From the NCBI GenBank assembly GCA_964199315.1, contig OZ116699.1:16306001-16370000 (forward strand): a DNA stretch of 64,000 nucleotides, read 5' to 3'. This document shows positions 521 to 54,237 of this stretch, one piece after another. The notes under the pieces are model-generated. The model ran no database searches and was not told the DNA's origin. It saw only the letters and a program-made list of their open reading frames with translations. The translations under genes were made by a program, and so were the position numbers. The first letter of the stretch is position 1, and each line of letters starts with the position of its first letter. Source of the stretch: Orbicella franksi (taxonomy: Eukaryota).

Positions 521-784
521 AGAAAATCCACAGCGTTCCTCACATATTTATCATATGGGAACAGGAAGAACCTGTCTATGCTGGTAGCAACCTTGAACTG
601 CACTGTATTGTGCTCACAAAGGATCCCGATACTAGATATCGTTGGTATTACCGTGATTCTGACGTCCTGGATGACAAGAAGTTAGGCACTCTCATAAACC
701 AGAGGCTGTACGAACTAACCCCGTTTCAAAACGTCGACCCTTGCCCAAAATGGAAGCTAAACCTGAAGTTGAAAAACGTGTCTG
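521..784 (+). pseudogene. Truncated D3 exon copy (3' end and donor lost at a rearrangement junction)
   Basis: Matches 33036-33320, then jumps at 785-789 into linker-intron sequence (equivalent to 31026); read-through ends KNVSEKYLA* at 801. Confidence 0.85.
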
Positions 785-28100: not shown

Positions 28101-31100
28101 ATGCAAAACCAATTAAGCTTAAGTTTCGTCCTTCAATCAAAAACCGCTCTGTGTTACATGACATGCGGAGTAGGAAAGCAATATGGCGACTGTTGAGTAT
28201 AATAGTGTGTGCGGTGGTTCTTACTTCTCTTCAGCAAAGTTATGTAGAAGATGGAGAACGAAGTCTATGAACTTGAATTTGAACAGGAGAGTGAAACGAA
28301 AATCAGAGTTTAAGAGGCAATGCACTGCCATCTGCATTATAAATCGCCCCATTCTGTTTGCTCGAATGGTGTTTGAAAGGTATGAATGATCTTAACGCAA
28401 AATGTGCTTCTTATCATTGTCAGCCGCATTGGTGGGAAACTTGGAGCGGTGTCAGCTGGGAATGAACACGTCGCTCGCGCTCAGCAATTTTATTCGGCAA
28501 AAAATGCGACGTTTAAATCAAATCAGCCGAACTTATTCATTCAAGTCGACTAAAACTAGTATTTGATTCGGCGCATGTAAAATGCGACGTTTAAACCGGG
28601 CCTTAGAGAGTAAACTGCAGGTGAAGTTAACGCAACCGGTACCAAGCTTCCTAATTTGGCCCCCCGAAAAAATTCTTTAGGGGCGAATGACGTCATCTCC
28701 ATGTTCGTCCATGTACTTTCTTTCGGGTGTTGTGCAATATTGCGGACTCTAGCGGATAAGTTGTTAGTTTGAAGTTAGTGTTAACGGCTCTTATTAACCT
28801 TACAGACTTGCAGCTGTCTTCACGAAATGTGTACGACTTTTCGTATGAACACAAAGCTGTAGTTTGACTGGTTGTTGTTTACCCTCTTCTCTTCGACCAA
28901 AACCAACGCTGCTTTCTGCTGAATATATCAACGAAGGATATGTGTAGTTTTACTTGGCTGGCCTAGATTTCTGTGCGCAAAATGTGCAACATAAACCCAG
29001 CGAAAGTGTTTACATAGGAAAAGAGTTCAACTCCCACAGGATTGCTTTGGTTCACCAACATGTCAGTCCGTCTCCGTCTCATTGTTTCGGAAATGAAAAT
29101 GCTCAATAGCTGTTCCCCCAAAGCCAAGGCGATTCAAAGTCGTGTTCGTAAACAGAATAATTGTCCTAGTGTTGGTAATAAAGCACGTCGTCTCGCATAC
29201 CGACGGAACAGGCAACGTTTGTGTCGATTTACACGGTCCGGAATCGCATGAGTTCCGGTCAGTATAAAACATGGACTGCGGACTGCGGTCTGCGGTCTGC
29301 GGTCTGCGGACTTCGGACTTCGAACTTCGGACGTCGGACTTCGGACTGTGTCTAAAACACGGACTGAGGTATGAAATGCGGACTAAGCATTACGGACTGG
29401 GTATAAAACACGGACTCAGGTATAAAACGCGGACTGCGGACTAAATGCGGCCTGCAGACTACAGTCCGTGTATTATACTGACCGGTCGTGACTAATATTA
29501 CGTAATACATGTATAAACGAAAACGAACCCACTCGTATGCACGTGCATACGATCAATTCATTTGTTTTCGCCCCTGCTGGAGGGAGGCCAATTTCACGTC
29601 TACTTAACAGCTCAGGCACAAAATGCTGTTCCGAGAATTTTTGCTTTTTTAACATACCAAACCTACCAATACTCGAACGCATCCTTTGATCTACGATTAC
29701 TACTAGTTTACCGAAATATTCCGTTTGGATGAAATTTTCCCAAAATGTCACATGGCTACCAAAGGATGAAGAAACCCGTTCATCTATTAGTAAATGTCAA
29801 TATCAGCTTCCATTTTTAAGAAAACGGCGTCATTTCTCTGCTGACAGTTCAATTTTGACCTGTTCTCAACTGTATTAGGTAACCCGGACAATCAATTGGT
29901 CTGTTTTGTACGTCTCGTATCAGACGAATAATGATATGTCTGTTTGATGCGTCATCCAGATACACTAAGTTGTTAAGTCGTCTGCCGTCGACTTGTTTTC
30001 AATATCATGTATAAAGTTAAAGTCTGTGTATAAGCCAAGTGGCTTATCAGGCCGGATCTTATCCCGGTTAATCCTGTAGCATGAAACGACTTGAAGTATT
30101 TCTACTCCCCCCTGGATGAGATGTTAGTCTATCGCAGGGTTACCCCCAGCATTAAATTCGCTCGTACCCATTTATACACCGGGGTGGAGAGAGGCACTGT
30201 GAAAGTGAAGTGTCTTGCCCCATAACACAACACGATGTCCCCAGCCAGTATGACGTGTAGCAAGACTTATTTTAAATCTTCTTGCCTTGATTTCCAGTTC
30301 CTCCTCAAGTGAAAAATTCTTCTCCTCCAAGGGTCGTCAAACCCGTTGGTGAAGAAGAAGTCAAACTGGTCTGTAACGTGAGAGATGCTCAGAACTACAC
30401 GTGGTATAAAAACGGTAAAGCCATTCTTCAATCGTCCGGACGTTACACAGTAAGGAGTAAGAGATTTCTACGAATAACCGGCCGCGTTCAAAAATCCGAC
30501 AGTGGAGTGTTTGTTTGCGTGGCAGCGAACAGTTATGGAAGTGCAAACTGCACCATAAGATTGATAGTTGAAGGTATAACTTTTTTTTTATCTAAGTGGC
30601 CGCAAACTTATTTACTAAAGGTATTTATACCATGCCATAAAAAAATACAACCAATCAGAGTGCAGGAAAGCAGTTGTATACTCGACGGTATTACGCCCAA
30701 CCTTTCCATCGTGCGTCGCGCGTATATCGCATGTGTTGTGCTGGTCACTGTATTTTTCCATGGCATGGTAAACCGTATAAAACAGTTATGCAGTGATTTC
30801 TCGTGGCCCACCATGGAACATCCAACTTGTTCCCAATATTTTCTTGGTATACACACTCACATAAAGGTTCGTGTGAGAAAATACAAGTGACCCATGGGAT
30901 ATTTCATGCTATACTACTCAAAAGTGTTGCATAACTAGTATGAACAGGCCTTACATTGTTTCTATTTTTAAGCATACAAAGTCTCCATACAAATCTCTAT
31001 AAATTTGGGTAAAAAATTTCTCCGCATATCTCGCATAAGAAAAATTGCTGTGACCAGAATTTTGGCGAGAGTCTTTGCATATTTACCTTCTTTCATTTCC

Positions 31101-34100
31101 CAGATTCTGGACTTTATCTATTGACCGGTTTTGATTTTTATTTTGATCTACTTTGAATTACGTGACACTGAAAACCAGCAATTGTTCATTGCTTTACCCC
31201 CCTCCCGTTCCTTCCAACAGCAACAACAACAACAACTTTTATTATGACTAGCATATTTACAATTTTGCAGAGCAAGTAAAAATTATCAATCTATCAGTTA
31301 TCCAATCTATCATCCCGCCCTGTAATTTTTTTCCTTTCCCAAGAAGTTTGAGAAAATAGTTTTTGCGTAAACTTACTCTCTGAACAGGACCGTAGCTGCT
31401 AACAGGGGGGAACCGAGGCACTTGCTTGGGTAAAGAAAAACATGTATGTGTTCTAGGTTTCTTTATGAGGCTAATGACCAAATGACGAGAACTCTTCCGC
31501 GATAGTATTTGATGATTAGTATATCTAACACGCTCATTTTGTTGATTTTCTCTTTATTTAGACCCAACAGTTTCACCTACGAACATTACAGGAGGTACAG
31601 CTTATTATTACATCCTCAGATTTAATTACAAATCTTTTATTTTCCATCACGGTCCAGTTGTTCGGAAGCCGATTAGCGCTAACCCAGGGTGACATGTTTA
31701 TCCGGGTTTCTTTTTCCTTTGTTCAAAAGCATTTTCTCCGATCATCAAATTCAAGACAAAGAATAAACTGAATTTGCTATTTAGGTCATGAATAAACAAG
31801 ACGAAGGACTTTCTGAAAGTCTATAACTAGTTGTACTTGATTAAAGAGAAGGAATTCTAATAATATCGCTTCTTTTTGGAATCTACATGTGGTGTTCTGA
31901 AAGAGTGGGAGAAATGCGTTATTCCCAAATGTGATTTAAGCATACATTTTGTTGCACATGTCCTGAATGTCCCGTATTACCAGCATCTGTGATGACTTTC
32001 AACATAAAATGAAAACCGCTCTAAATAAGAAATCTACTCTGTTCTATGCTTCTGTGAAGTTAAAAACGCTGTTTACTTGTCAACTTTACAGAAAAGCCAC
32101 AATTCCTTTATCCAACGAAAATGGAGGCGATAAAATCGGCTTATAAGGAAGGCGACAAGTTTACACTGACGTGCGAGGCCAAAGGTGTCCCAGCTCCGGT
32201 AGTCACGTGGTACAAGGATGACAAGGTGTTTCAAGGAAGACACAGAGCCGGCGAGTTTATAGCAACAAAGCAATACGACTACGTTATTAACTTCTTTGGA
32301 GTGGATATCGCTGATGAGGGGAATTACACATGCATCGTATCGAACATGTATGGCCGATTAACATATTCGTACAACTTTGACGTAATTGGTAAGTAGCACG
32401 GAACGTTGTTCTCTTTTCACTTTATAGAAGCGCAGTTTAAAAAATTCACTGTATAGAAGAAATCATGTAACCTGCGACCAGGCGTTCTTTTATTCTAATC
32501 TTCCGCTGCCGCGAAGAAAATTGAAACGCCTGAAGGTAAGTGTTTTGCGTCGTTCTGTGATTGGCTCAAAAGCCTCGCATGACACTCTTTGTAGCCAATC
32601 ATTGAGGGGAAGCATGCTGTTTGTTTTTTGTTTGTTTTGGTCAGGCTGTTGATTAGGAGAAAACCAACATCAATCCTGATTGAATGAGACGTTAGCACGT
32701 TTTTCCGCGTTAGCCTTTGTTGCCCACTACAGAGATCAGGTTTTAGTAATCAGTAGAATCGTGATGAAAGCGAGTTATATACTGACAATATTCCCAGATT
32801 TTCATTGTTTGTATTTGCGATTCATCTGTAAAATGATTGTTGTATTGTAATCTTTAAATTTGTAAATAAGTAAGAATCTCCAAAACATTGTGTGACGTTT
32901 GCGTGACACGTGCGTGACCCAGCACCTTTAGACAGTGCTACAAGGTAGTTATCAATCAATGTACGTGAATGTCATTACAGTCGAAGTCTTTGGCGAAGAA
33001 GCTATGCCTTTACACTGCCTTTTTTTCTCCTAAAGAGAAAATCCGCAGCGTTCCTCACATATTTATCATATGGGAACAGGAAGAACCTGTCTATGCTGGT
33101 AGCAACCTTGAACTGCACTGTATTGTACTCACAAAGGATCCCGATACTAGATATCGTTGGTATTACCGTGATTCTGACGTCCCGGATGACAAGAAGTTAG
33201 GCACTCTCATAAACCAGAGCCTGTACGAACTAACGCAGCGTCAAAACGGCGACCAAAATGGCCAAAATGGCCAACGTTGGCCAAAATGGGAGCTAAAACT
33301 GAAGTTGAAAAACGTGTCTGCGGCTGATTCCGGACAGTATGCATGTCAAGCTGAAAACGTTGTTGGTAATGATACACGGTTCACCCACCTCAATGTCACA
33401 ATCAGACCCATTACCCCGTCAGCAACAGGTATGTAAAGGAAAGTGTTTGACCGACGAGAATAAGCAATACTTTAGCCATAGTGCTCTACCGTAAGATCTC
33501 CTCGACGCAGTCCAATAGAAATCAATGCCAGCGGCTAACCTGTGAAATGCCGGACAGGTTGAGATGAGCCGGTCATGAAAACGCTGGCCGATCTCAGTAC
33601 GTCAATAACTCATTAAGCGTGCGCAATTTACAACATTCACCAAGAGATTTTTTAAACTGTTCAAATAGAATTCTTATTTGTTGACTAAGGTCGGACTAAA
33701 CTAAGAAATATTTGAGTCGATGACATTTCCCACCGACTTTGCAACCAAATGTCCATCCAACCAAATGTTTTTCTTCTGGACTTAGTACTAAGTCAATAAG
33801 CTAGGGTTTAGGAAAACCCCGCCTTACGAGCAGCTTAAGAAAGCTCAGTCGTTGACTTAACGTAAGTATTCTTGCGGATAAAGGACTGTGCAACAATTAC
33901 CAGGAGGGGGGCTGTAAAACCAGAAAGGGGGGGCGCACACCAAGTAAACTCATACCCTAAAGGAAAGGGGAGTAACGGTTACATGTAAACGTCTCTTTGA
34001 AAAGTAGGGTGGTGGTATCTCATTTTCTTATGGGCAAGATGACTTAAAGATTCGAATACCACTTATGTCTGACTAACAATGATACTCATTTATTTCTTGA

Positions 34101-34499
34101 ACTGTCTATAAAAGACAGGAATTGCACCGAGCTAAAATGCACTCCGGTTAGCCTAAACACCACTTTGGTTAGCCTAACCAACACCGCAGGTAGCCTATAT
34201 GGCAACATTGTTTGCCGGAGAAGCGCTCTGGTTAGCCTCCAGTGGTTTTGAGTCAGCGTTAGCTAAAATTAGAGCTTACTTGGGAATGGTTACTTGTAGG
34301 TCTTTGATAGGGTTGCAGTTCCCGTATTTAGCTGCATGTTTAACTGAATGTATTTAGCGGCCAGTTTTTCGTGACGTTTTTGTTGACTAGTTTCCTATAC
34401 AATTTATATATTGAAGATTGTCAGAATTGCGATGATTAGGGACGCGAGAGCAGTGTAAGGGAATCTGCAGGATTTAGCAGATTGATTGATGATCGATCC

Positions 34500-34542
<43 letters not shown>

Positions 34543-37500
34543 TGGCTAACTGGCTGATGATTGGTTAATTGAATGATTGATGATTAATTGATTGATTGAT
34601 TAGACTGACTAATGATTGATTGATTGTTTTGAATGACCTATGACTGATTGAATGACTGACCGACCGACCGACCGACCGACCGACCGATCGATCGACCGAT
34701 CGATCGATCCATTTATTAATTCGCAGTTTTGAATAGATAAAGTGTCTGTCTCTATTTAACAAGTTTGTTTTCATATTTTTCTCAGGTGCGCCAGTGATCA
34801 CCACTCTGGTAGATACGCGTACCCCTGCCTCAAAACATGCGCAGTCAGATCCACCTTTATTAACACCGCTGGAGATCGGCCTGTTTGTCGCGGGCGCCGT
34901 CATCATGATAGTGTTGATCGTCGCTGTCCTTTGCGTCTGTATACACATGAAGAAACGTAGGAAGAGTATGAAGCTACCGGACGCTAAATACGACGTTGCT
35001 AGGGAAAGTGTTGTCATTGAACCACAAAGTTTCTCCCGAAGGACGGCATCTATGTCCTCGACTGGATCAGCGGCAGCTTTGTTCATGCGACAGAGGAGTA
35101 TTCGTGGTCGCCTGGAGTCGAGGCTAACACAGGTAAGGACTGGTGATGAACAATTTAAATAGCTCATAGGTAACGCTGTGGTGTTTTGGGTTAAAGGATG
35201 AGTTAAAGGACGAGTTTGGAATGGGTGTTTAAATTAGAATAATTCCATTGAATGGTGTAAAATTAGAACTTGAATGTTAATCATGTGACGGACCGTAGAA
35301 AATGCTGCAAGTGCACGTGAAAGAAGGAACCGATCAGATATTTAAGCAAACACCAACAAGTCAAACATGTTTATGATTGTTATCTTGCCTGTCTCACACT
35401 CATGTGACTCTCTTTAGGTGTCGGAAATCGAGGTGCCGTATGACGAGGCTTGGGAGCTGGATAGAAGCCAGTTGGTTTTCTCTGAGATACTGGGCGAGGG
35501 AGCGTTTGGCCGAGTTCTTAAAGCAGAAGCTCTTGGTCTGGGTTTCACGGTAGCTGTCAAGATGCTAAAAGGTGAATAAAGTGACCAGTAGACCTGGTAA
35601 TCTGGCATTCCCTTCCGCTAATTCTCAACCGACTAACTGAGGGACTAACTCTTTCCCGGGATCTTACTCAGAATAAGCGCTCGCCGAGGAGAGAACCATC
35701 TTAGTTTCCAAGACTACACGTGGTTTCAAAACAGATCCATTTTAGTTTTGTTACATGGTTGCTTATCGTCGTCATATCTTTAGTTTCTGAGTTTACGCTC
35801 ATTTCCCTTCTTTCCTTTTTCCTCTACATGTATGCATTTTCCTTTCAACATGGTACGACCACTTAGCTAAGAGTAACTTGTTGTATTTAAAGGCATTAAT
35901 TACAGTAACGGAATTTCCGCGTTATACAGGTCTGGATTTAGTTCTTATCAAAGACTGGGTGAGAGCACGATCCGGCAAGGCTTTGAAACACGACCGAAGA
36001 AATACCATACCCCTCGTTACTTTAAGAGTCTTGTTCAATTCAAAGATTCCTTTTTAAACTTCATCAGTGTTACCCGTAGAATGTAAAGGTGCCTTCACGT
36101 TCGTGATTCACAAAGATGGCCTTCGCCACTATTTCCTTCTGAAGCAAGGTAATTTCAAGTAATAGGGCTTCTTCGAGATCCAAATCCAAGATGGCGGTTA
36201 CTTCGCTAGTTAGTGTTACTGTCTTGAAATGAAAGTACTCATTTGAGGTTAAGCACACGATCATGCTATCAATTTCATTGTAACTTATCGTTGCAATTTG
36301 CAGAGGATGCAACAGATCAAGAATTAATGGATTTGGTGTCAGAGATGAAGGTGATGAAAACAATAGGAAAACACAAGAACATCATTAATTTATTGGGAGT
36401 CTGCACTCAGGAAGGTAATGTTCCTCCATCTCTTGCGATACAAGGTTCCTTTGCACCATTTACGGGGTATATAGATTTCTTTGGTTGTCTTTTATTCGTT
36501 AATTAAGCCCGCACCATTTTGAATGTCTGGAACCGAAACACCTTTGGAAAATGGACAGGTACATGTGACTGGAAGTTCTGAACATTGCTCAGTCCCAGAC
36601 CTTGCATTACAGACTCCGAATGAAACAAGATAGATGCGGCTTGGCAAACAAAAACAAACAAAATACATAGCACAAAATACACGATACAAAACAGTACCGA
36701 CTTTACCTTAAAAAGAAGCAGCGTGGAGGGGTTAGGAATTGTAGTTCTAAGCAGGTTTCCGTAGGCAATAGACAAGTTTGACTTGTCGGAATAGGAGGTA
36801 CTGATGAAAGCTAGTGTTGGTGGGCGAATTATGTTATAGTTTTCACCTCACGTTAGCTATGGCTGGGGCGGATCTAGGGGGGGGGGTGGGTTCGGGGGAT
36901 TCGGTCGAACCCGGTCGAACCCCCTTACTTAAAAAAGAAAATTGAGACGTTATAACTAGCTGACTTGGCCTCAAAATGCCGGAAATCCCTTTTATCCGAG
37001 GACATCAATTTTAATAATTTTCTGCGTGAGGATGCTCCAAGAGCCCCAACAGAGGACCTCCTTCGGCAGTCCGTACCTCGAACCCTCTTCTCTAAAATCC
37101 TCTATCCGCCTCAGTTAGGTATTTAGTAAAACTTTGAAACCTGCACTTCAGTAATAATGATAATTGCGAAAATTATCACTCTCGGGCATACAGCTTTTCA
37201 TTTTAGTTTTCTCTTGCTGGTGAATTTGGAAAGGAAAACCTGCCCTTTTTTCCAGGCTTTGTGTCATTCTTGCCTCTTGTTTTCAGGCCCCTTGTTTGTT
37301 GTGGTAGAATACGCGGCCCTTGGCAACCTGCGTCAGTTCCTACAAGAAAGAAGACCTGGGTTAGAATATCATGATGATGTTGATGCCCAGTCTCCGAAGC
37401 AACTCACTGTTCAAGATCTGCTATCTTTCTGTTATCAAGTAGCAAAGGGAATGGAATTCCTCTCATCAAGGAAGGTAAATACTTCACTTATTCAACACTG

Positions 37501-40500
37501 TGCAAATCCTTTCAATGTATATGCGAGTTACAGTGTCTCTCTTATTTATACTCCCCTGCCTGCACTCGGTAACAAGAGCCGTCTCTGGCAAACCTTCGTT
37601 GAAGCACTAGTAAATTTCCGATTTTTATCGCCCAGTCTAACGGTAGCAAAAGTGTTCAAAGCTACTTTGCAAATTGTCACGTGTGCGAACGAAGACGTAT
37701 TTCCGGCTACAAGCGCCAACCGGAAATACGTCTGTGTTCACAGGCTACGTCATCATGGACTGATCAGTAGCTTAGCTGCGTCGGAGAAGAAGCTGTGAGC
37801 TCGATCCGGTTGAGAAGACCGCAATTTGTCAAGTTTATAACAGCAAAAATAGAGTTGGAAAGAGGAGGAAAAAAAAGGCAGATAGCTGGGAACCCTATGA
37901 AGAAACCAGCCGGTTTATGGTTTCTTTTGATTACATAGATTGATTTAACCTTGAATTTAATACGTTAGACCTTTGTGTAAAATCTTGATCGATCGCATTG
38001 GTAAATAAGGTCCGTTTATTATTAGGTAATTTAATATAGGAAGTAATTGTACTTTTATAACTTCACAAAAAAGAAGAAGTGAAGGAGACTTTATACATAC
38101 TCTACCAGACCAAATCCCTGAGAAATGACTGTTTCTGCTAGTTCTTAACTTGGAACTTCTGGGAGAATGTGGGAAGAGTTATGAGAGTATACTTTGCAGA
38201 ATTATTAGCTAGAGAAATGATGTCTATTATATCTGTTATTCGACAGTGCATTCATCGAGATCTGGCAGCTCGAAATATTCTGGTGGCTAAAGATAGGGTC
38301 ATGAAGATTGCTGATTTCGGTCTTGCAAGGAACGTGCATGAAGACGATTATTACAGAAAAACAACAGACGTAAGTAAAATAACACATTTATTAATCAGAA
38401 TAATGTGAAAATAATTCCCCCGTCGCAGCCAAGTGATCTGAGGTGAAAATAGACGAACTTTCCTTTTGAGGATAGGATGCTAGTCTATTACCGTTAAACC
38501 CACCCCCCACCCCCACCGTTTTATTTATACACCCAAGTGGAGAGGTCAAGGGGCTCTGTGAGAGCAGAGTGTCTTGCGCAAGAACATAACAAAATAACCC
38601 TGACTAGGATGGGATTCAGTCCTCTGGATTTGGTGTTAAACCATGACCGGAAAGCAGCTCCTGGTTTTGAGATTTCATGTTTCATAGCTCTCTTGTTTTT
38701 CCTCTCTCCTTTGCTCAGGGAAGACTTCCAGTGAAGTGGATGGCGCTTGAGGCATTGATTGACAGAGTCTACACCACCCAAAGTGACGTGTGAGTGTAGG
38801 GTGCCGTGTTGTATGATTCCCTCTATATCTCCCGTTGTGTTGTCCAATCAAACTGTTTTATATGCATTTCTGATGCACATCAGGAGCAGTTCAGTGCTTG
38901 ATGTAATATATCAAACACGAGAGACTGTGTTTTATTGGGATATCCAAGCACCGAGAAGAGAGTTGAAAATACGACGCGTAGCGCAGAGTATTTTTGACGA
39001 AATTCGAGGTGTTTGGATAGCCGATGAAACACTGTCTCGAGTGTTTGATATGTCTTCTCAATCGAAACAGAATAAACTCGTCAAAATTTATGCTAATTAC
39101 GACCGGGTATCCAAACCTCCTTCACGGTTGTGATTTTCTTTGGTTTACCTTGATGAATTATTAATGAGTTTGAGACATATTAATCCCGAGCCTTAGGTTT
39201 TTGGAAATGTTCATTATGATAAGTGAAGAACCCTTATACGAGATGGTTTTACTGAGAGATTGTCTCTCCCAATTAACGCTCTTGAATCCGCCCTGTATCT
39301 TGAACACACTTCCTTCTTTCTTTGGATATTTTTAACTTTGCTATTTCCTTTTGTTTATTTAGGTGGTCGTTTGGAGTGTTGACGTGGGAAATTGTAACAT
39401 TTGGTGAGTGACCAGTATATTTATTTTTATGGTTAAAAAGGTCATGCAACATGTTCTACCAATATTGCCATTGTGCTGGTGTCAGTTTAAACGTCAATAC
39501 GTTTCGTGGAGTGATCTTTCATTACCCTCTTTTATGATTTTAAGGTGGCTCTCCATATCCCGGCATACCAGTGGAAAATCTCTATGGGCTGCTCAAGTCC
39601 GGTTATAGGATGAAACGACCAATCAATTGCGACAGAGAATTGTAAGTTACATTACTATCCCCCAGTGGCTGGTTAAACTTTCTTTGAAAACAACTTACAA
39701 AATGATAGGCTGGATATGACAGTGAACGTGTTGGCGAAATGTACTGATGATGTGGAGTGAAGTTGCTTTCTGCAGGAGTGATTCGAGAGCAGGGTCGGCA
39801 TCGCGACCTCTCGCCTCATTGTGTTACAGTGCGTATGGAAGTTTGCTTTTTTCAAACAATTGATTTCTCATTTTGTTGCAATTTGATTACCGTAGGTATC
39901 AGCTCATGCTAAACTGCTGGAGTGAGTTTGCCGACAAAAGACCAACTTTTCCGGATCTTGTGGGAGAATTCGATCGTATGATAACGATGCTTTCAGACAA
40001 GGTAAACGTTATTGTTAGAAGAAGAATGATTAGGGACTTTTTTTAAGCCTGAAGCTTTCGAGGAATTTTAGCTCGAGTTGTCAAGCTGTCACACTTCTTC
40101 GACTTCTGCATAGGCAGCATTTATACGTCTTACCTACACTAGTTACTCTAAATCTCAAAATACGTTCAGTGTTCTGTGACATTTTATAAAGGTCAGTACA
40201 CATCAGGAGACATATTGCGGGGACATGTTGCAGTGGACGTTTTCTTCGTGTAACATGCCCGATTTTTCAAGAAGCGTTCTCGTCCCCGCAACCTGTTGCA
40301 TGCAACTCAGCTGGGTTGAATTTCTTGCGTCCTGAAGCAGGGACAATGTCAATGTGGCATACTGTACACTGTAGACTGCTCTTCAGTACAAACTGTCGCT
40401 GCTACAACATAGAAATGAACCAATATCCGCTTTGTGTGCACCTGCTCGCGTACTGACTGCACAGTCCCTACAACATGCTTCCTATGCGTACACTCGAAGG

Positions 40501-41395
40501 GGCTTGTCTCCGCTTCACATCACCGAAAGATGTCCGTAGTGTGTGCCGACCTCGAAGCGGTGATAAAACTCTTCTCGCTACATACAGAGGCAGACTGGAC
40601 GAAAATTGTCTAACCCGCAATCAATTCCTCCCACCTGCTATAACAAGAAATTTATGTTTCTACAAGGCACTACGGCTAATTTATAAAAAAGTATAAAAAC
40701 TATTGCCCCAAAATTGTGTGGCTTTAAAAATACTCTTTTCCCTTGCGTAGGAATATCTTGACCTTCAGCCACCACTTGTGAGTCCACTGTCGGCAAGAAC
40801 ACCTTCATCTTCCGAAGAAGACAACGTCTTCGGAAGTTCGGAAAACGTGTGTGATTTGTCGAAAAGTAGCAACAGTTTGAATTTTCACGACGGGGAAATC
40901 TCTGAAGATGGCGCGCATGATGTGGGACACGGTGAAGATGGTGATGGCTACGCTGACATTCGCCGCCAGCCCGTCAATGAGCCACTTCTTGATTCCTGTG
41001 GAAGCAAAACGTCGTTAGCTTCTAAATCTTCACTTTTCGCCAAACGAAAACTCGACCAACTCAACGGGAGCATCGTCTCGCTTTCCTCGCAACTAAGTAA
41101 ACAATTTCGTGGGCTAGAAGACAACGAAGAGCACAATAAAGAAGAAAATGTCGGTCTTTTAGATGAGGAAGTCGATCAAGGAAGCGACGATGCTTTTGAA
41201 ACTGGTGACATCAGAAATTCGAAAAGTTTACCGGAGCCATCACAAGGTGGTCGCGCCTCAGGAAGACCACAAGACAGCGGTGCCATGGAAACAAGTCTGG
41301 ATTCCGGAGAAATTGATCCTGCTGTATTGATCGAGTACGCACGCCCAGGAAAGACAAATCCCACAAGAAGACCCTCCAAACAGAGCGATGTCTAA
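25054..41395 (+). CDS. FGFR: Fibroblast growth factor receptor (3 Ig + TM + split tyrosine kinase), 15 coding exons, 989 aa
   Basis: join(25054..25141,30298..30573,31562..31594,32092..32388,33036..33428,34786..35132,35418..35571,36304..36414,37287..37474,38247..38369,38719..38789,39363..39403,39545..39641,39896..40001,40751..41395) = 2970 nt. All introns are GT-AG with consistent phases and there are no internal stops. Motifs: [24 protein letters not shown], activation-loop [21 protein letters not shown], post-kinase EYLDL. Confidence 0.92.
27716..28604. mobile_element. TIR element with repeated CATGTAAAATGCGACGTTTAAA motifs
   Basis: The motif occurs in both orientations at 27718-27900 and 28500-28604. 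Confidence 0.5.
29255..29485. mobile_element. MITE with internal 7-bp (GCGGACT-like) tandem array
   Basis: TIRs CCGGTCAGTATAAAACATGGACTG / CAGTCCGTGTATTATACTGACCGG. Confidence 0.7.
30013..30248 (-). mobile_element. SINE fragment in FGFR intron 1
   Basis: Near-identical to 4717..4950. Confidence 0.55.
30298..30573 (+). CDS. FGFR: FGFR exon: Ig domain D1
   Basis: ttccag| acceptor, GAAG|GTATAA donor, phase 1-1; VKLVC...WYKNG...[12 protein letters not shown]-set Ig motif. Confidence 0.9.
31562..31594 (+). CDS. FGFR: FGFR 33-nt D1-D2 linker micro-exon ([11 protein letters not shown]; no acid box)
   Basis: Polypyrimidine tract + ttag| acceptor, GGAG|GTACAG donor, phase 1-1; conserved in all three copies in the window. 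Confidence 0.75.
32092..32388 (+). CDS. FGFR: FGFR exon: Ig domain D2
   Basis: tacag| acceptor, ATTG|GTAAGT donor; [18 protein letters not shown]...[19 protein letters not shown]2-like. Confidence 0.92.
33036..33428 (+). CDS. FGFR: FGFR exon: Ig domain D3 (with QNG repeat insertion)
   Basis: ctaaag| acceptor, ACAG|GTATGT donor; LELHCIV...RWYY...[18 protein letters not shown]. Confidence 0.92.
34495..34710. repeat. (ATTG)n / (GACC)n microsatellite at the right edge of the duplicated cassette (copies at 4235-4316 and 10210-10335)
   Basis: Direct inspection. Confidence 0.9.
34786..35132 (+). CDS. FGFR: FGFR exon: stalk, transmembrane helix, juxtamembrane
   Basis: ctcag| acceptor, CAG|GTAAGG donor; [25 protein letters not shown] followed by KKRRK stop-transfer. 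Confidence 0.92.
35418..35571 (+). CDS. FGFR: FGFR kinase exon (Gly-rich loop, VAVK); not in ORF track
   Basis: [51 protein letters not shown]; tttag| and G|GTGAAT. Confidence 0.93.
36304..36414 (+). CDS. FGFR: FGFR kinase exon (alphaC)
   Basis: [37 protein letters not shown]. Confidence 0.93.
36863..37114. mobile_element. Decayed MITE with GGGGCGGATCTAG-type ends (hAT-like) in an FGFR intron
   Basis: CTGGGGCGGATCTAGG ... CCTCTATCCGCCTCAG; no clear TSD. Confidence 0.4.
37287..37474 (+). CDS. FGFR: FGFR kinase exon (hinge, kinase insert)
   Basis: [24 protein letters not shown]...[15 protein letters not shown]. Confidence 0.93.
38247..38369 (+). CDS. FGFR: FGFR kinase exon (catalytic and activation loops)
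   Basis: [41 protein letters not shown]. Confidence 0.95.
38719..38789 (+). CDS. FGFR: FGFR kinase exon (P+1 loop)
   Basis: [23 protein letters not shown]; ctcag| and GT|GTGAGT. Confidence 0.92.
39363..39403 (+). CDS. FGFR: FGFR kinase micro-exon (alphaF)
   Basis: [13 protein letters not shown]; tttag| and G|GTGAGT. Confidence 0.9.
39545..39641 (+). CDS. FGFR: FGFR kinase exon
   Basis: [32 protein letters not shown]. Confidence 0.92.
39896..40001 (+). CDS. FGFR: FGFR kinase exon (C-lobe end)
   Basis: [35 protein letters not shown]. Confidence 0.92.
40751..41395 (+). CDS. FGFR: FGFR terminal exon: 214-aa acidic Ser-rich C-terminal tail
   Basis: gcgtag| acceptor, begins EYLDL (FGFR PLC-gamma docking motif), open to TAA at 41393-41395. 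Confidence 0.88.
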   Translation, partial: EYLDLQPPLVSPLSARTPSSSEEDNVFGSSENVCDLSKSSNSLNFHDGEISEDGAHDVGHGEDGDGYADIRRQPVNEPLLDSCGSKTSLASKSSLFAKRKLDQLNGSIVSLSSQLSKQFRGLEDNEEHNKEENVGLLDEEVDQGSDDAFETGDIRNSKSLPEPSQGGRASGRPQDSGAMETSLDSGEIDPAVLIEYARPGKTNPTRRPSKQSDV

Positions 41396-47035: not shown

Positions 47036-47345
47036 TTTATTTCTTAAAAAAACCTAATTCATTCAAAACAAGTCTAAATAAATAGCAGCTCGGTAATATA
47101 TAAATATGTAAAATACTATCGACCTCAGCAAATAAATGTATTGCAACCAAAATACATCATGTAGTTTTTCCACAAAACATTACATTTTATATTCAATATG
47201 AATAATCGGTAACCTTAGTATAATAATTCTACTATAAATATATTGGAAGAAAATGCTTGTTCGCCATACATGCAATCTGTCTTATATTTCATAAAATTCT
47301 CCGATGCTAGTTAGGTATGGGCATGATCGTCGCTGGGTAGACTTC
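47036..47345 (-). promoter_or_regulatory. 3'UTR with five ATTTA pentamers and an AATAAA poly(A) signal
   Basis: ATTTA on - at 47235-39, 47133-37, 47101-05, 47079-83 and 47075-79 (the last two overlap); AATAAA at 47041-47036. Confidence 0.55.
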
Positions 47346-47495
47346 TTAAATTGGGCAGGAGTGTCTGATTTCAACTTGCGTGTTGAAGCACGACTGTGGG
47401 GTGTCTTTTATGTCATAAACAACCTGGTCTAAGTAGTCCAGTAGCACAAAGTTACGTAGCTGAACTGCTTTACGAGCGCTGATACCTCTCGCACT
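47346..47495 (-). CDS. Cytokine-like gene exon 6 (helix D, C-terminal Cys pair)
   Basis: gtttgtttcag| acceptor, 49 codons + TAA. Confidence 0.85.
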   Translation of the reverse strand, partial: SARGISARKAVQLRNFVLLDYLDQVVYDIKDTPQSCFNTQVEIRHSCPI

Positions 47496-50400
47496 CTGAA
47501 ACAAACACGTGAACAAGGAGTTAGATCTGGGCTGACCAAAGCAAACGTTTATTTCAATTTGAAATTTTCTATTGCATTGCAATAGTAGAACAGCTTTCAA
47601 CTGAGTGTCGTAAAACCAGTACCAAAATAATCACTGACTAATCACAAATTACACAGACAATCCAGACAATCCGATCTCAATCCAAATCTCAACACAAAGG
47701 CGAACGAGTCGCGATTGGTTTTGGTTTTACTCAGTCTGATTAAGTGACAACGTGCCAATCGCCTAGTTCTAACGAGGTAATGTAAACCGAAAGAAAATGC
47801 AAATTACCTAGGGAACTCACGTGAAAACGGCGCTATTAATTAACTCAAACTGTAAGCATAAAGTATGTCGTTAGAACATGGTAACAATAAACTTACTTTC
47901 TGATGAGCAGCCAGAGATGTCATGACGGTCATATTCACTGGCAAAGATGCTGTGATATTTTTACCACGTGTGTGAAGGGCCTGTATTGAGAAACGATAAT
48001 ACCGTAGATCAGGAGGAGTTAGGACGCAAAATACATCTTACTGTATTTCGTAATTGTATATTCTTCACTTGAAAAGGTAGTATTCCTAACTGGGCTTATC
48101 CAGCTATTTGACGGCATGTGGCCGCGCACTGACTAATGAAATAATCGAATCAGTAACCCCTGATGAATTAGAGCACGACATGATTCAGATAAACGGAAGC
48201 AGAACAAGCGTTTTGGGAGAAACTATAGCACTTTCTGCGTCAGGGAGAGACAGTAAATGGAGAGACATCAAATTTGATTTTGTGACAGAATATCAAAGAA
48301 TCAAAATTGATATTTTTGTGAAATTCTGATGTTTTAGTCATTACTGCTCTTCTTTCTTCTCCTATTACAACATAATAAAGCAAGTTTGTAGCAATTTCTC
48401 GGTCATACTTATAAAAAATACGATATATACCACCCAAGAAAATGCTCTACCTCGGCAGCGTGGAGAGTTTGTTTTATAACATTCGGCTCAGGAGAATCAC
48501 ATCATAACACTTACATAGTTGTCGATGTCTTTGATTCTATTTTCCAAATTCTGAAGCAATCCATTGAGTGTCTTCTTCAATGTGTGGCCAGAGATACTGC
48601 AGTGAAATTTTGACCGCTTTTCGCTCTCCACGACAACTTTCAATGGCTCCACAAAGTTCTTCAGTGCTGTTATGCACTGAACAGCACGCTGGCTAGTACT
48701 CTAGTGATAAATATAGCTAAATTGCATTAGTACACCTAACACCCAGTGAACAAGTCTTTTATTTCGCAACACTGGAAGCAGTATTTTCAGTCGTTAAAGC
48801 TTTTTAAACGTTTTGTATTTGCTCAGGTTTTCAGTGGCAGTATTGACTACCGACAAACTTATGGTTAATAGAGGTGAATGGTTATAAAAACCTGTTGAAT
48901 TGTATGTTTTTGTTCGCTTTTTCAGCCCACGTGCACAAAGCAACGTTTCGGTACCGTAGTATTATGCATAGTGTATGAGCGTAAAACAAGAGATTCGGCA
49001 TGGTCGTGGACCTTCCGACATAAATCTTGGCACCTTTGTTTGCTCCTTTGACGTTTGCCGGGCTTCATAACCATTCCCCTCTATTATCTATGATAAACCT
49101 AAACCTGAACGTTTTAACCTGTCAAACTGGACAAAAATGAAAGCAACTACGATTCTTCATTCTTTTCATCCCTGAATGATTTGAAGCAAATAAATAAACA
49201 TACACATCATGATTTTGTTTGGTTCTGTGAATAAAGGCTTTCTAGTTAGCTACCATTCAAAAAAATAGTGAACAGCACTGTCATGTGGTATAGGGGAACC
49301 TTTGTTTAAAATATGTGCCTCATTAGCATAAGATATTCAGTTTCTCATCAAGTTACCTTATCCGGCCACTCGCTGTAGTCGCTTGGAACAAGTTGTCCTA
49401 ACGCACGCCCAAGGGGACCTCCTCGGTGAGAATTACTAAATCCATGAGCTTTTTTCTATGAGAGAGAAAACAACTTTCTTAATGACAACAACAACATCAA
49501 TAAATCATCAAAAGATAACATGATATTTTTTTCAGTGTCATAGACACTAGGTGGAATTACTCATTAGGTAATTCAGGATGGCACACTAATAACCGCACGT
49601 ATATCGCACGTTTTGAGACATTTTACTACTCATAAATCTTTCTTAATAATGAAGGCGAGAGGTAGTATAATCAGGCAGAAGTGAATACTGTGTGCTTAAC
49701 AATTTGTAATGTAGCATTGAAATGACCTTAACCGGCAAAATTCGTTAAAAAGTTCCCTTTGTTTGTAATATTGCTCATGCTGAGATTTGTTTACAATATT
49801 AATGATCTTCTATCAGTAATCCATTGTTCGACATGATTAAGAGGTCCAATAATTTCCCCGACCCGTTGCGAACTCAAATAAAAATTATTCATACTTGATT
49901 GAGGTGAATATTTAAGCCATTTTTTTAAGCCAGTGGCTGGATTCTGATGCATGATGGATGAACAACGTAACTGCGCTTTAAGCTTGGACTAAACTTGCTT
50001 GAAGCAATAACAGAGCAAGCTAACATAACAGCTTTCAAAGTTGTTTCGAAACTGTTTAGTAATGACAGAGTAACACCAGAAATAACTACTTACGTAGCAT
50101 TCAAGTCCTTCATAAGTTGAGTCCTTGAGACAGTCAAACACTGGGTCATCCGGGACTTCACTCCCTTCACCAAAGGCCAAACCCGCGATGAACAAACTGG
50201 CCCAAATAAAGAATGTTTTACCTAAAAAGAGAAAGATAACCACACGAAATGAGCTTTTAATTAAAAAGTGAACAGTGTTCAGTGTTTACATATCATACCA
50301 AGTTTCTTTACCGTTGTGCCCTTTAGATTCCTAAATCCTGGTCACCTTAAGACTTTTTTATATAACATTTTATTAAAAGAAATTAAATAAGAAAAGACAT

Positions 50401-52980
50401 TTTTGAGGTGTTACATCAGTTCGTGCGAAAAAAAATAAACTTGTTCGTTAGAAAAGGTAATTAAAATAAGAAAGAAGTATGTTATAGTTCTAGCTGATAA
50501 TTTTCGTAAATAAAGAATGAAAGATAAGCTGAATAAGGAATCACGCAATAATTTAGGGCCAATTAAGAACGTTTAGGGAGTGATGACTTTAACAGCACCC
50601 CTCCCGCGGTCGATCCCGTCTCCTTATGATCCGCTTTCGTTAACATGTAAGTTAGGAGATTAGTGTTAATATATCATGTAAGGTGGACGCTTTTTCGGTT
50701 ACACAATGACCGCTTGTCTTGTTCGAAAGCAAAAGCTCTTTTCAAACAAGACTAATAACGATGACAGCTGACGTCACAGGCACAAATACCAACTTGGGTC
50801 TATTTAAAGTCTTTGCCAGTTCTTATTGCATGGTCGTTGAAAAAAAAGAAAAAGTTTACTTCCATTTAGTTTGGAGTGATGCGATGAAAATGAAAAAGAA
50901 CGGCCATTGATAATTTATATGGGTTCGGTTCCTTGTTTTTCCTTGTACCTAGATAACAACTACAGCCTCGTGTAAATTATTCTCTATTTAAAGTAAAAAT
51001 AGTTTGTGACGGTATTTTTTTTTTCAAAAAACACTCTTGCATGTAACGGAATGATCTCTAGGAAAACAATTTTTTATCTTTAGATTTAGATATTTTGTAC
51101 GATTTTTTTAATTCAAAGTTCTCTGTTTCAACATGTATATCTTACAGTTACGCCATTTAAAGGTATTTTTTATCTCACCCAATTTCAATTTAGGTGTATA
51201 ACGGGACAGATACTTGCATATTTTAAAATTTTAGTAGTTTCTGAATATTTAACAACGATGAAAATTGAATGCCTCGATCAAATAACGAGGATATTTTAAA
51301 CTGGTAGCAGAAATTATAGGACTTTCGGACCTGTCACGTCCACAGGCGTTGCATGGAAATCACAGTAAATAAGAACGAATTCAACTAAGTGAAATACATT
51401 GGACACATCGGACTCGAGTTCTCTACGCGAGTGCGTAAGAATCAACTCGACTACTGAGAAATTTGACCCATTCTTTTTGTTTCAAAAGGAGTTGAAGTAA
51501 GTCGGTTCAGCTAATTTAAGAGTTAATCATTGCTAACGTTCTTAGACCGAACAATCAGCTGAAATCTATTCCAAAATCTACGATAAAATTAAATTCTTAT
51601 CTTCAAGCCACCGTGTAATTTTTGATGTAAAGAACTTACGAAACTTCGTAACTTACAGATTTGCAGAGTACCGAGGAAAAATATTTGATAGAAACTTTGA
51701 ATGTTAGGAAATCTAATTTGTAATCGCCCCTTATTTATAACTAAGTCACGGTAAAAGAATCTGTTCTGCAATATATCTATGTTCTAACTGTTTAGAGTAT
51801 TTTCTGTCGTTATATGCTATGGTCACTTTTCACTTTGTCTTTCCAATCCTTTTCTCACGGTCGGATGAATGGACCCCGCTGGGTTAAATTTTAATTCTGA
51901 CAAGGTAGAAGAACAATGACGTACATGCCTTAGACGACGCCGCTAATAAAACAAGAATTTAATATTTACCTAAACATCTCGCATTTGTTCAATTTGTTTA
52001 TCGCTATTGTGGTCCAAATTATATGACACTGTGGCAAATAAATACACTGACAGGAACTGCACTGTGATGGTTCATGTTTTCCCTCTGATAAAAAGCAGCA
52101 TTTGGACATTTAACGGCGTTGTAGTTTTGAAGAAGACGACAAGAAATTTTTCAAGATATAGAGTGGAATCCCGATCTTTCGAACTTCCAAGGGGCTGAAG
52201 GAACATTGGTTTGAAAAATCGGATAGTTCGAGTAATCGAGAGTAAAATTACAATGTTCGACTGAGGAGAGGGCAACAAGTTTTGGTTCGAATTATCGGTG
52301 GGAGGTTCAAAAATCGAGGGTTCACGAAATCGCACGTTCTGAGACATTTTACTACTCATAAATCCTTCTTAGCTTAGCAACGTCCTCGGCAGAATTTGAC
52401 TTAAAATAAACCAAAGCAAACTTTGTTAACAAGGCTAAAATTGTTGTTCTTCCTCTGGAGATTGATAGTTTAAAGTAACCAAATTCGGTAAAAGTTGGGG
52501 CTCAAGGATAAAGGCGGGTTAGAACGCAATTTCTTATGTTTTAGGGAGCCAAATTATGATATCTTTAGCCAATTCAGTATTTCAATGACTGACACGGGTT
52601 TCTTAAAATCGAAGAAAATGTCGAAATGACATTTTTGGTACACTAAACAGCAAAGATTGTAAGCCCAACATGTCAAGGACAGCCAAGACAAATCACGGTT
52701 CTTGAAAGCTCTAAACTAGTTTCAGAAGACAAATGATCGGATTCTAAAGATCGATTTTCCCTTGGTCAAAAGGTGTAGTGAACCACGCTAACAACGTTTA
52801 AAAAGCTCACAATCAAGGTCTTTAAAAAAGGTCTGCGTTTAGAAATTCTGTCATTCATTACCTTAATTTGTATACTTCAGTAGCTTTTAGATACAGAAAT
52901 TCAGCTATCTTGGTGAAAATGGCTTCAACTTTTCATCGTTGGTGGAAAAAAATTATATTGTTACACTTACCTAATTTCAT
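47346..52980 (-). CDS. Secreted 218-aa protein, putative long-chain four-helix cytokine (LIF/CNTF-like, IL-6 family)
   Basis: complement(join(47346..47495,47897..47980,48515..48700,49357..49455,50094..50221,52971..52980)) = 657 nt, all GT-AG, phases 1,0,0,0,0. Protein: MKLGKTFFIWASLFIAGLAFGEGSEVPDDPVFDCLKDSTYEGLECYKKAHGFSNSHRGGPLGRALGQLVPSDYSEWPDKSTSQRAVQCITALKNFVEPLKVVVESEKRSKFHCSISGHTLKKTLNGLLQNLENRIKDIDNYALHTRGKNITASLPVNMTVMTSLAAHQKSARGISARKAVQLRNFVLLDYLDQVVYDIKDTPQSCFNTQVEIRHSCPI. Confidence in the gene model is about 0.85; the family call is less certain. Confidence 0.72.
47897..47980 (-). CDS. Cytokine-like gene exon 5 (CD loop, two N-glycosylation sequons)
   Basis: caatacag| acceptor, AAA|GTAAGT donor, 28 codons. 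Confidence 0.82.
48515..48700 (-). CDS. Cytokine-like gene exon 4 (helices B and C); not in ORF track
   Basis: tttatcactag| acceptor, TAT|GTAAGT donor, 62 codons with amphipathic periodicity. Confidence 0.82.
49357..49455 (-). CDS. Cytokine-like gene exon 3 (AB loop); not in ORF track
   Basis: ttttctctctcatag| acceptor, AAG|GTAACT donor, 33 codons. Confidence 0.8.
50094..50221 (-). CDS. Cytokine-like gene exon 2 (signal peptide, helix A)
   Basis: ttctctttttag| acceptor, TAC|GTAAGT donor. Confidence 0.85.
52971..52980 (-). CDS. Cytokine-like gene exon 1 (ATG AAA TTA G)
   Basis: aaccATG context, perfect G|GTAAGT donor, phase 1 matching exon 2. Confidence 0.75.
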
Positions 52981-53034
52981 GGTTGAATATCGACTGTCCC
53001 TTTGGAATAACGTTAGACGTGTCTCTCTTGAAAT

Positions 53035-53042
53035 CTTTATAT
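53035..53042 (-). promoter_or_regulatory. TATA box (TATAAAGA) of the cytokine-like gene
   Basis: About 55-60 nt upstream of the ATG, implying a 5'UTR of about 30 nt. Confidence 0.55.
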
Positions 53043-54237
53043 TCTTGTTTGTACCTCAAGTACTTATGTTCACTTAGAGTCTTCCTAAAGGACTGTGTGT
53101 CTCTTTTATGCATTTTGACGGCGGATGTCCTTCGCATTATTTTTTCCATGTACATTGTTGCAGGTGATTTCATCATAACTAAGTCATACTCTAAAAGAGC
53201 CTTTTTGGGAGTCGTTAGAGATGATCTTCCTCGTTTAAGTTCCAGGGGAAAGTCACTCAGTGGAAATTTTCCTGTTCCTACCGGTCACTACTGCTTTCTA
53301 ATCCGGCAGCGAGAATGCAATCATGCGAGGAACGGGATAACAAAGAGCAAGCCTGCGCTAAAAGTAGTTTCGGTTATGCAATGACGCATGGTGATTCCGG
53401 CTTGACTCAGATCAAGAAGTATTCCCGAATCTTGAAATCACCCATATTTTCTTAATTTGGGAGTTTTTTTTTAAAGATATTTGCTTGATATCTCGGTTAT
53501 GCTCGATTTTCAAGTGCAGTATGGTCTTGCGTGGGTGTTAGTCACAAAAATCAGAGCAACGCGGGTCCATTTTCTGGGTTATAATTTCAGTGTCGATTTT
53601 TTTAGTCCCTTAGTACTAGCAGGTTATTTTCACTTCAAAAGCTCAATAAGATACATCACCTTTAACGAGTTAAGCAAAAACGGACTGAGCAAACGGGAAA
53701 ACTGATTCGAAACCACTACGAAAATTAAAATTCTGTTTCTGTCATACGAAAGTGTCCACACCTAGGCCTCGATAACAAAAGCAGTTGTGAATGTCTGTTT
53801 CTAGATTTCAGATTTTGTTCACCAAGTTTAATGACAAAGAATTTCTCAATAACATATTGAAGGTTTTCCTGGTGAATTTGGCATTTTTAGTTCTTTCTAT
53901 ACTATTATGTTAAGAACATAAGTTGTCGGTTTATTCAGTAGTTCCCAGTTTATTCGTTCATTTTCCACTTCCCTGTTATAAACTCTCTTGTTCGAAACCC
54001 TCCAAATTTAGCAGAGCTTTAACAAAGGATTACCACAATTAAAATTAGTTCTAAAATGGTAGCTCAGTCATACAACAATTGATAACGTTCTCGCCCTTGA
54101 TGCAAACGTGAAATACGAAAGTTTTGGTCTCTTAGCTTGCATCTAAATTTAAACGATCACTAATTTATGCAAAGTACAGTAAAGGGTCTGTATTTTGCAA
54201 CGTTTCTTCTAAATATAACAAACGCTTACAAATATAA

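Follow-up and report, generated by a model that had tools for sequence, protein, structure and literature searches.

In a 64,000-nucleotide (nt) stretch of the genome of the stony coral Orbicella franksi (contig OZ116699.1 of assembly GCA_964199315.1, positions 16,306,001 to 16,370,000 of the forward strand; hereafter the window, whose own numbering is used throughout), the minus strand carries a six-exon gene at 47346-52980 with a coding sequence of 657 nt and a product of 218 amino acids (aa). The gene is real, protein-coding and conserved among stony corals, and we consider it highly probable that what it encodes is a secreted protein with the long-chain helical cytokine fold. On balance we also lean towards the fuller statement, drawn by analogy with proteins of this fold, that this conserved secreted protein would serve as a ligand in extracellular signalling. 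Within the fold class of long-chain helical cytokines, we would classify it as a new sequence family restricted to corals and not as a member of the IL-6 family.

Gene structure and conservation

The exon chain was rebuilt by script from the sequence (Table 1). All five introns run from GT to AG; the donor is GTAAGT in four, and the phases, in order, are 1, 0, 0, 0 and 0. The product starts with a basic n-region (MKLGK), a 15-residue hydrophobic core and an A-F-G cleavage motif, which, as read from the sequence pattern, make up a textbook signal peptide and predict a secreted protein, with a mature chain of about 197 aa, 22 kDa and an isoelectric point of 8.5. Cysteines stand at positions 34, 45, 88, 113, 205 and 216, and N-glycosylation sequons at NIT149 and NMT157. 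An initial annotation of this DNA, made from the letters alone, had drawn the same spliced open reading frame (ORF), signal peptide, cysteines and sequons, every one of which was reproduced exactly. It had also called the gene hidden; by an indirect check, the window's own protein is missing from a collection of 5.8 billion proteins, in which its orthologues occur as uncharacterised proteins. There is no second copy or paralogue of the gene inside the window. An internal duplication, considered for the likeness between helices B and D (L-K/R-N-F-V), was rejected as not significant (p = 0.2).

Exon 4 alone, searched against 1.84 billion representatives, returned a 217-aa protein of Oculina patagonica with a matching layout, together with many short ORFs, and word-indexed searches seeded from the Oculina protein gave the remaining relatives. 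Orthologues of 192-255 aa are present in five other stony corals. Those of Oculina, Desmophyllum pertusum (255 aa) and Acropora cervicornis (192 aa) are deposited as “hypothetical protein”, and those of Pocillopora damicornis (RefSeq LOC113676481, 218 aa) and Montipora capricornis (216 aa) as “uncharacterized protein”; identity to the window protein is 65% for Oculina, 58% for Desmophyllum and about 45% for Montipora. Orthologues in Scleractinia only, and sequencing runs that contain the stretch and are labelled coral metagenome, bear out the cnidarian host assumed in the initial annotation.

By exact spliced mapping, the exons of the Pocillopora RefSeq model measure 10, 125, 99, 186, 96 and 141 nt, their phases again being 1, 0, 0, 0 and 0, and the inner exons of Desmophyllum 99, 186, 90 and 135 nt. 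The exon-1 ATG, its length of 10 nt and the GGTAAGTG donor are kept in both species, and exon 4 is the best-conserved exon. All six cysteines are retained in the full-length orthologues, and alignment gaps against Oculina and Desmophyllum are confined to the CD loop and the stretch just before helix D. Conserved residues include Trp76, Cys88, L-x-N-F-x-x-P-L of helix B, Cys113 and L-N-K/E-T at the start of helix C, and further N-M-T of the CD loop, R-N-F/Y-V of helix D, and C-F/L-N with the final cysteine in the tail. The ratio of nonsynonymous to synonymous substitution rates (dN/dS) was 0.25-0.35 in three pairwise comparisons (Nei-Gojobori), which points to purifying selection across the deepest split of the Scleractinia.

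Structure prediction

AlphaFold2 was run on orthologues with the family alignment. The Oculina model reached a predicted local distance difference test score (pLDDT) of 82.5 and a predicted template modelling (TM) score of 0.80, and the Montipora model 83.4 and 0.81, respectively. Both contain helices A, B, C and D, two short helices in the AB loop and one in the CD loop; in Oculina numbering helix A spans residues 30-49, and is hence not the short helix described in the initial annotation, helix B 81-105 with a kink at a conserved proline, helix C 120-144 and helix D 175-199. The C-terminal tail with its cysteines is of lower confidence in both models, and pLDDT is low over the signal-peptide region (residues 1-25) of the Oculina model. 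From these models the fold is confidently predicted to be the one shared by class-I helical cytokines and hormones of the long-chain type, a four-helix bundle with up-up-down-down connectivity.

Structure searches agree with this assignment. In Foldseek searches of the PDB, the top 38 matches of the Oculina model and the top 36 of the Montipora model were helical cytokines, with weak E-values of 0.02-1 and TM scores of 0.5-0.66, and with prolactin first for both; Swiss-Prot models of prolactins, CNTF and IL-11 matched at E about 5e-3. VIA-align scores computed for the Oculina model on the Foldseek candidates gave Z values of 14.9 for CNTF (164/174 residues, root-mean-square deviation (rmsd) 3.4), 14.7 for LIF, 14.4 for prolactin, 14.2 for IL-11, 13.8 for CLCF1, 13.5 for IL-6, 13.2 for G-CSF, 13.1 for IL-27p28 and 11.9 for growth hormone (GH). 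A Foldseek-independent scan of 48,161 chains placed nothing other than helical cytokines at ranks 1-26 with either model, long-chain class-I members coming first (Z 12-14), followed by interferons, EPO, TPO and class II, and the first non-cytokine was ferritin, partially aligned at Z 7.6 and 7.8. The up-up-down-down bundle anticipated in the initial annotation is thus what the orthologue models give, and their best matches are long-chain cytokines, not an unrelated family.

Shape searches of AlphaFold DB and the ESM Atlas returned cardiotrophin-1/2, LIF, IL-11 and prolactin. The AlphaFold DB clusters also match, at TM 0.4-0.5, a number of unnamed invertebrate proteins, among them A0A3M6V303 (173 aa), T1KLS3, E2AB84, E9GQP2 and A0A164TR67. 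The search listed no organism for these; we take the first to be from Pocillopora and the others from mite, ant and Daphnia. By their modelled shapes, they may represent further undescribed families of helical-cytokine-like proteins.

Beyond the bundle itself, the coral gene has a signal peptide, a mature length within the roughly 160-200 residues of long-chain class-I members, and a phase-1 intron followed by phase-0 introns. The intron positions agree only partly with the vertebrate class, namely in the signal peptide, at the end of helix A and after helix C.

Placement among the long-chain cytokines

The initial annotation had gone further and named the product a probable LIF/CNTF-like four-helix cytokine of the IL-6 family. 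The long-chain four-helix part of that proposal finds support in the orthologue models, but the IL-6-family label does not, as prolactin and GH score equally well. The structures of the IL-6 family and the GH/prolactin family differ by no more than half a Z unit, with ranks that swap between methods and models: CNTF and LIF lead prolactin by 0.3-0.5 Z in the VIA ranking only, prolactin tops both Foldseek rankings, and in the 48,161-chain scan IL-11 and placental lactogen reach 14.2 and 13.4 with the Oculina model and 14.0 and 13.9 with the Montipora model. On the modelled structures, the assignment therefore stays at the level of the fold class.

That the protein should belong to the IL-6 (gp130) family as a LIF/CNTF-type member in the specific sense, signalling through gp130/LIFR-like receptors, strikes us as improbable. 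CNTF and LIF do have the highest VIA Z values, cardiotrophin-1 and cardiotrophin-2 are the best shapes in the Atlas and in the AlphaFold DB clusters, and identity over the structural alignment is 13-17% for CNTF, CLCF1 and IL-27p28 against 6-10% for prolactin, IL-6 and G-CSF. These Z margins, however, are within noise, with prolactin leading in Foldseek and placental lactogen tying with IL-11; none of the CNTF, LIF_OSM, IL6 or IL11 hidden Markov models (HMMs) matches; and the six-cysteine pattern is unlike that of LIF, while CNTF is without a disulfide.

The sequence motifs on which the label had leaned also failed to hold up across the orthologues. In the Y-x4-G motif, Tyr46 is conserved, but Gly51 varies as G/H/G/N/S/G. 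The I174-x-x-R177 segment, read as site III in the initial annotation, appears as ISAR, LTSR, QTSR, SASR, SKHS and NHHT, the latter two in the complex-clade corals. The orthologue alignment shows no F-x-x-K where helix D begins, and the sole conserved aromatic residue there (in R-N-F/Y-V) has leucine at +3. Nor does the coral protein show the GH/prolactin pattern of a disulfide from the AB loop to helix D plus a small C-terminal loop: its cysteines are placed on helices A and B, in the BC loop and in the tail, and the AB loop and helix D have none. The gene layout, with its phase-1 intron in the signal peptide and phase-0 introns thereafter, fits the class as a whole and not one branch of it.

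Evidence against the proposed reading and alternatives to it

Several results weigh against the reading of this gene as one for a secreted, cytokine-like ligand, and the first group of them concerns RNA. RNA runs contain 10-36% of the sequence words of the locus, and four of them were aligned over 47150-53100. The five splice junctions drawn in the initial annotation received no support here, since none of the four runs shows a spliced joint at any predicted intron and contigs that cover exons, at very low depth, enter the introns. In the polyA run X5, four error-free contigs fall on exons 6, 5, 4 and 2 (47331-48004, 48440-48654, 49994-50233), but each extends 12-104 nt into the flanking introns, colinear and through every splice site it reaches; intron 5 is mostly covered, whereas the 2.7-kb intron 1 and the 3′ untranslated region (UTR) are not. 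Two deep 2026 polyA runs have nothing on the exons, their reads lying solely on repeats within introns, to which they are 90-95% alike. The exact sequence joining exons 4 and 5 had no match in metagenome contigs. The short database proteins that match exons 2 or 4 are all unspliced genomic ORFs running into the intron, and therefore provide no transcript evidence.

We estimate that random DNA would place contigs on exons as those of X5 are placed about 1 time in 100. A query made of exon 4, intron 4 and exon 5 found near-identical words in 14 RNA runs, and the share of X3, X5, X6 and X10 over the exon 4-5 stretch exceeds that over the locus as a whole by a factor of 2.4-3.8. We read these data as low-level transcription of the locus in which the sampled RNA is largely unspliced, the splicing of the five junctions being inferred from conservation. 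The read-through contigs of X5 could stem from low-level transcripts that are unspliced or from a quirk of sampling. The three intronic repeats of Table 1 attract RNA contigs that are 90-99% alike and have loose ends on both sides; the repeats are members of abundant families that are transcribed, and the shares of the runs given for the locus are inflated by them.

It is conceivable that a gene without spliced reads in four runs, with contigs crossing its splice sites and with an uncovered 3′ UTR, is a prediction artefact or an untranscribed pseudogene. We regard this as scarcely credible for a locus whose ORF is intact, whose exon lengths and phases are conserved in three genera, whose dN/dS is 0.25-0.35, whose six cysteines are invariant in full-length orthologues, whose promoter block and start context are conserved, and whose exon-rich stretch is enriched in several RNA libraries.

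A second group of adverse results concerns the link to cytokines. Neither of the two models is of the window's own protein, and the alignment behind them is shallow, with 9-12 rows. Two profile searches of protein collections found no relatives outside the Scleractinia. The window exons and the five orthologues gave no relevant Pfam match, with none to CNTF (PF01110), LIF_OSM (PF01291), IL6 (PF00489) or IL11 (PF07400), even at E 10, and none to Hormone_1 (PF00103); phmmer and profile searches of the PDB returned noise only, including a non-significant IL-4 match at E 2.5. There is thus no sequence link to any cytokine family in the Pfam or PDB searches, and receptor, binding and signalling role rest on analogy. 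The ESM Atlas queried with exon 4 alone gave nothing. Protein language-model neighbours of the Oculina protein, as far as they are named, are all cytokines (LIF at 0.93, cardiotrophin-2, prolactin and IL-6-like clusters, 0.90-0.93, with more than 195 shared features), but the Montipora protein finds cytokine clusters only at 0.66-0.68 (prolactin 0.68), behind arthropod unknowns at 0.83, its nearest neighbours being unnamed arthropod clusters and DUF725. Since the Oculina result was not replicated in Montipora, language-model similarity to cytokines is a lead only. Finally, the aligner itself cautions that, with helical models, best Z values of about 14 may arise from common arrangement alone; this caution is answered by the 48,161-chain scan, because ferritin lies so far below the cytokines there.

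These observations invite the alternative that the protein has the fold without the function, that is, that it is a secreted helical bundle specific to corals, whether convergent or long diverged, serving in matrix, mucus or venom or as a carrier or antimicrobial. In its favour are the lack of sequence homology to any cytokine, the confinement to the Scleractinia by sequence, the high scores that helical bundles reach from arrangement alone, and the unnamed arthropod clusters and DUF725 as nearest neighbours of the Montipora protein. We nevertheless judge it unlikely. Only cytokines match, over 150-165 residues, the up-up-down-down topology together with its long crossovers and the mini-helices in the loops; ferritin-like bundles match part of the model at half the Z; and the class has as its gene signature a signal-peptide intron of phase 1 with phase-0 introns after it.

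Proposed signalling role

If the protein is an extracellular signalling ligand, as we favour, it can be envisaged as an N-glycosylated, disulfide-bonded protein of about 22 kDa that would be secreted and diffuse. By analogy with every known protein of the fold, two or three of its helix faces would bring together receptor chains with a cytokine-binding homology region, for which a gp130/Domeless-like receptor or CRLF3 would be candidates, and the assembled receptor would activate JAK and STAT. JAK and STAT are reported to co-occur in Cnidaria and to extend as far back as sponges and cnidarians (PMC13203501), and CRLF3, a class-I receptor, is reported from animals ranging from cnidarians to mammals (PMC12409108). 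Only tentatively, and short of the view just favoured, do we entertain the stronger proposition that the coral protein is a true relative of the bilaterian class-I long-chain helical cytokines, acting through a cytokine-receptor-homology receptor and JAK/STAT.

A different receptor is suggested by the neighbourhood. The locus is collinear with the Pocillopora and Desmophyllum genomes, including a convergent gene for an immunoglobulin (Ig)-domain receptor tyrosine kinase (Table 1), whose Pocillopora counterpart encodes 979 aa with Ig and kinase domains. The helical cytokines SCF, CSF-1, Flt3L and IL-34 signal through Ig-domain receptor tyrosine kinases. By analogy, the coral protein might be the ligand of its neighbour, which lies tail-to-tail with it at about 6 kb in a pair that is syntenic in both other corals, and IL-34 does occur among the matches of the Montipora model (Z 8.3). 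This synteny, however, is no tighter than in the DNA around the pair, ligand and receptor genes need not be adjacent, SCF, CSF-1 and Flt3L are not in the top 50, and the best matches are all long-chain JAK-coupled ligands. We hold such a pairing to be very unlikely.

In full-text literature searches, no description of a cnidarian four-helix cytokine came up. A 2026 survey has IL-6 in vertebrates only (PMC13203501), and a 2026 preprint recently traced it to jawless vertebrates (lampreys) by structure and synteny (PMC13081863), a tracing that came late because helical cytokines diverge so fast. Cnidarian JAK/STAT and CRLF3 have so far been without a known ligand, and the coral protein is a concrete candidate. 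The presence of the fold in a coral hints that this class of signalling molecules is older than the bilaterian animals; if the protein is a true relative and acts through such a receptor and JAK/STAT, then the split of cnidarians and bilaterians is younger than the ligand as well as JAK, STAT and CRLF3, and the protein could be the kind of endogenous ligand missing for the orphan ancestral receptor CRLF3 or for coral gp130-like receptors. The finding would also bear on coral immunity and on wound and stress signalling, with a weight limited by the inferred function and by the sub-family level.

Flanking sequences and neighbouring features

Upstream of the gene, ACATCCGCC...(C/T)ATAAAAGAG is the longest invariant block before the ATG, from which it is separated by about 125-130 nt. 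Its TATA-like box reads CATAAAAG in the window and TATAAAAG in Desmophyllum and Pocillopora, with the consensus (C/T)ATAAAAGAG. Judged from the consensus, the block at 53101-53128 is probably a core promoter with an ETS-like site. A 69-aa ORF at 53176-52967 on the minus strand was considered as a coding first exon and rejected, as it has frame-breaking indels in Pocillopora and the conservation is centred on the TATA block. The Desmophyllum database protein begins with 59 residues from the promoter and 5′ leader and skips the signal peptide (positions 10001-10182 and 12947-13084 of the Desmophyllum DNA). This N-terminus is most likely an annotation error, because the Desmophyllum DNA does contain the proper 10-nt exon 1 and signal-peptide exon and because the ORF is broken by indels in Pocillopora. 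The Acropora cervicornis model is likewise without the signal peptide and most of helix A.

The putative 3′ UTR contains five ATTTA pentamers against 2.0 expected (p about 0.04 by shuffling), a weak hint that they may serve as AU-rich instability elements of the kind present in cytokine mRNAs. Near the gene there are no NF-kB consensus sites. More Ig exons are present at 521-8127 (including 5011-5349), which may or may not belong to the kinase gene.

Table 1. Position of the gene, its flanking elements and other features in the window
Feature	Position	Strand	Description
Exon 1, coding part	52980-52971	-	ATG plus 7 nt, then GTAAGT donor; phase-1 intron inside the signal peptide
Exon 2	50221-50094	-	Remainder of predicted signal peptide and helix A (Cys34, Cys45); Pocillopora exon 125 nt, phases identical
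Exon 3	49455-49357	-	Long AB loop, two short helices, invariant Trp76; 99 nt in window, Pocillopora and Desmophyllum
Exon 4	48700-48515	-	Helix B, BC loop, helix C (Cys88, Cys113); 186 nt in all three corals
Exon 5	47980-47897	-	CD loop with short helix, conserved N-M-T sequon
Exon 6	47495-47346	-	Helix D, C-terminal tail with Cys205 and Cys216; stop TAA 47348-47346
Conserved promoter block	53101-53128	-	ACATCCGCC element, then TATA-like box; from three-species DNA alignment
Putative 3′ UTR	47345-47036	-	Ends with AATAAA (47041-47036), 304 nt past the stop; extent inferred
Ig-domain receptor tyrosine kinase gene	30309-41395	+	I-set/Ig_3 exons, PK_Tyr exon 37157-37795, last exon 40778-41392
Intronic repeat (intron 5)	47548-47746		High depth from many unrelated RNA contigs; not a product of the gene
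Similar intronic repeats	48941-49139, 52125-52323		Very deep, diverged RNA contigs

Comparison with known systems

The Unpaired proteins of Drosophila (Upd1-3) are the established invertebrate ligands of JAK/STAT. Like the coral protein, they are secreted helical ligands of an invertebrate without routine similarity to vertebrate cytokines, and a cluster containing Unpaired is weakly represented among the language-model neighbours of the Montipora protein (0.66). They are, however, longer and bilaterian.

IL-11 and IL-6 (PDB 8qy4, 8dps, 1alu) align with the orthologue models over nearly the whole chain, at Z 14.0-14.2 and 13.3-13.5, respectively. IL-6 genes have a single intron within the signal peptide and three in the domain, with conserved phases (PMC13081863), and the coral gene resembles them in its signal-peptide intron and phase-conserved domain introns. 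It differs in that helices B and C lie in a single exon, that neither the IL6 nor the IL11 HMM matches, and that no conserved site-III tryptophan can be assigned.

With CNTF and LIF (PDB 8d74_D, 1emr) the coral protein shares the long-chain bundle, with 150-164 residues aligned at rmsd 2.9-3.4, and an intron at the end of helix A. Identity, however, is 10-15%, there is no HMM match, the site-III F-x-x-K is lacking in the coral protein, and six cysteines are distributed over its helix A, helix B, BC loop and tail. CNTF, moreover, has no signal peptide, whereas the coral protein has a predicted one.

The likeness to prolactin, placental lactogen and GH (PDB 2q98, 1f6f, 1a22; PF00103) is of the same order, with Z values of 14.4, 13.4-13.9 and 11.8-12.0 and Foldseek TM scores of up to 0.66. 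Identity is 7-14%, the coral gene has one more intron, and the helix-A cysteines have no counterpart in GH or prolactin. The lengths, in turn, are similar, and the two cysteines near the C-terminus of the coral protein could form a small terminal loop. An exon 1 with some 10 coding nt, followed by a phase-1 and then phase-0 introns, is common to the coral and GH genes, and a phase-1 intron in the signal peptide with phase-0 introns behind it is the pattern of GH and IL-6 alike.

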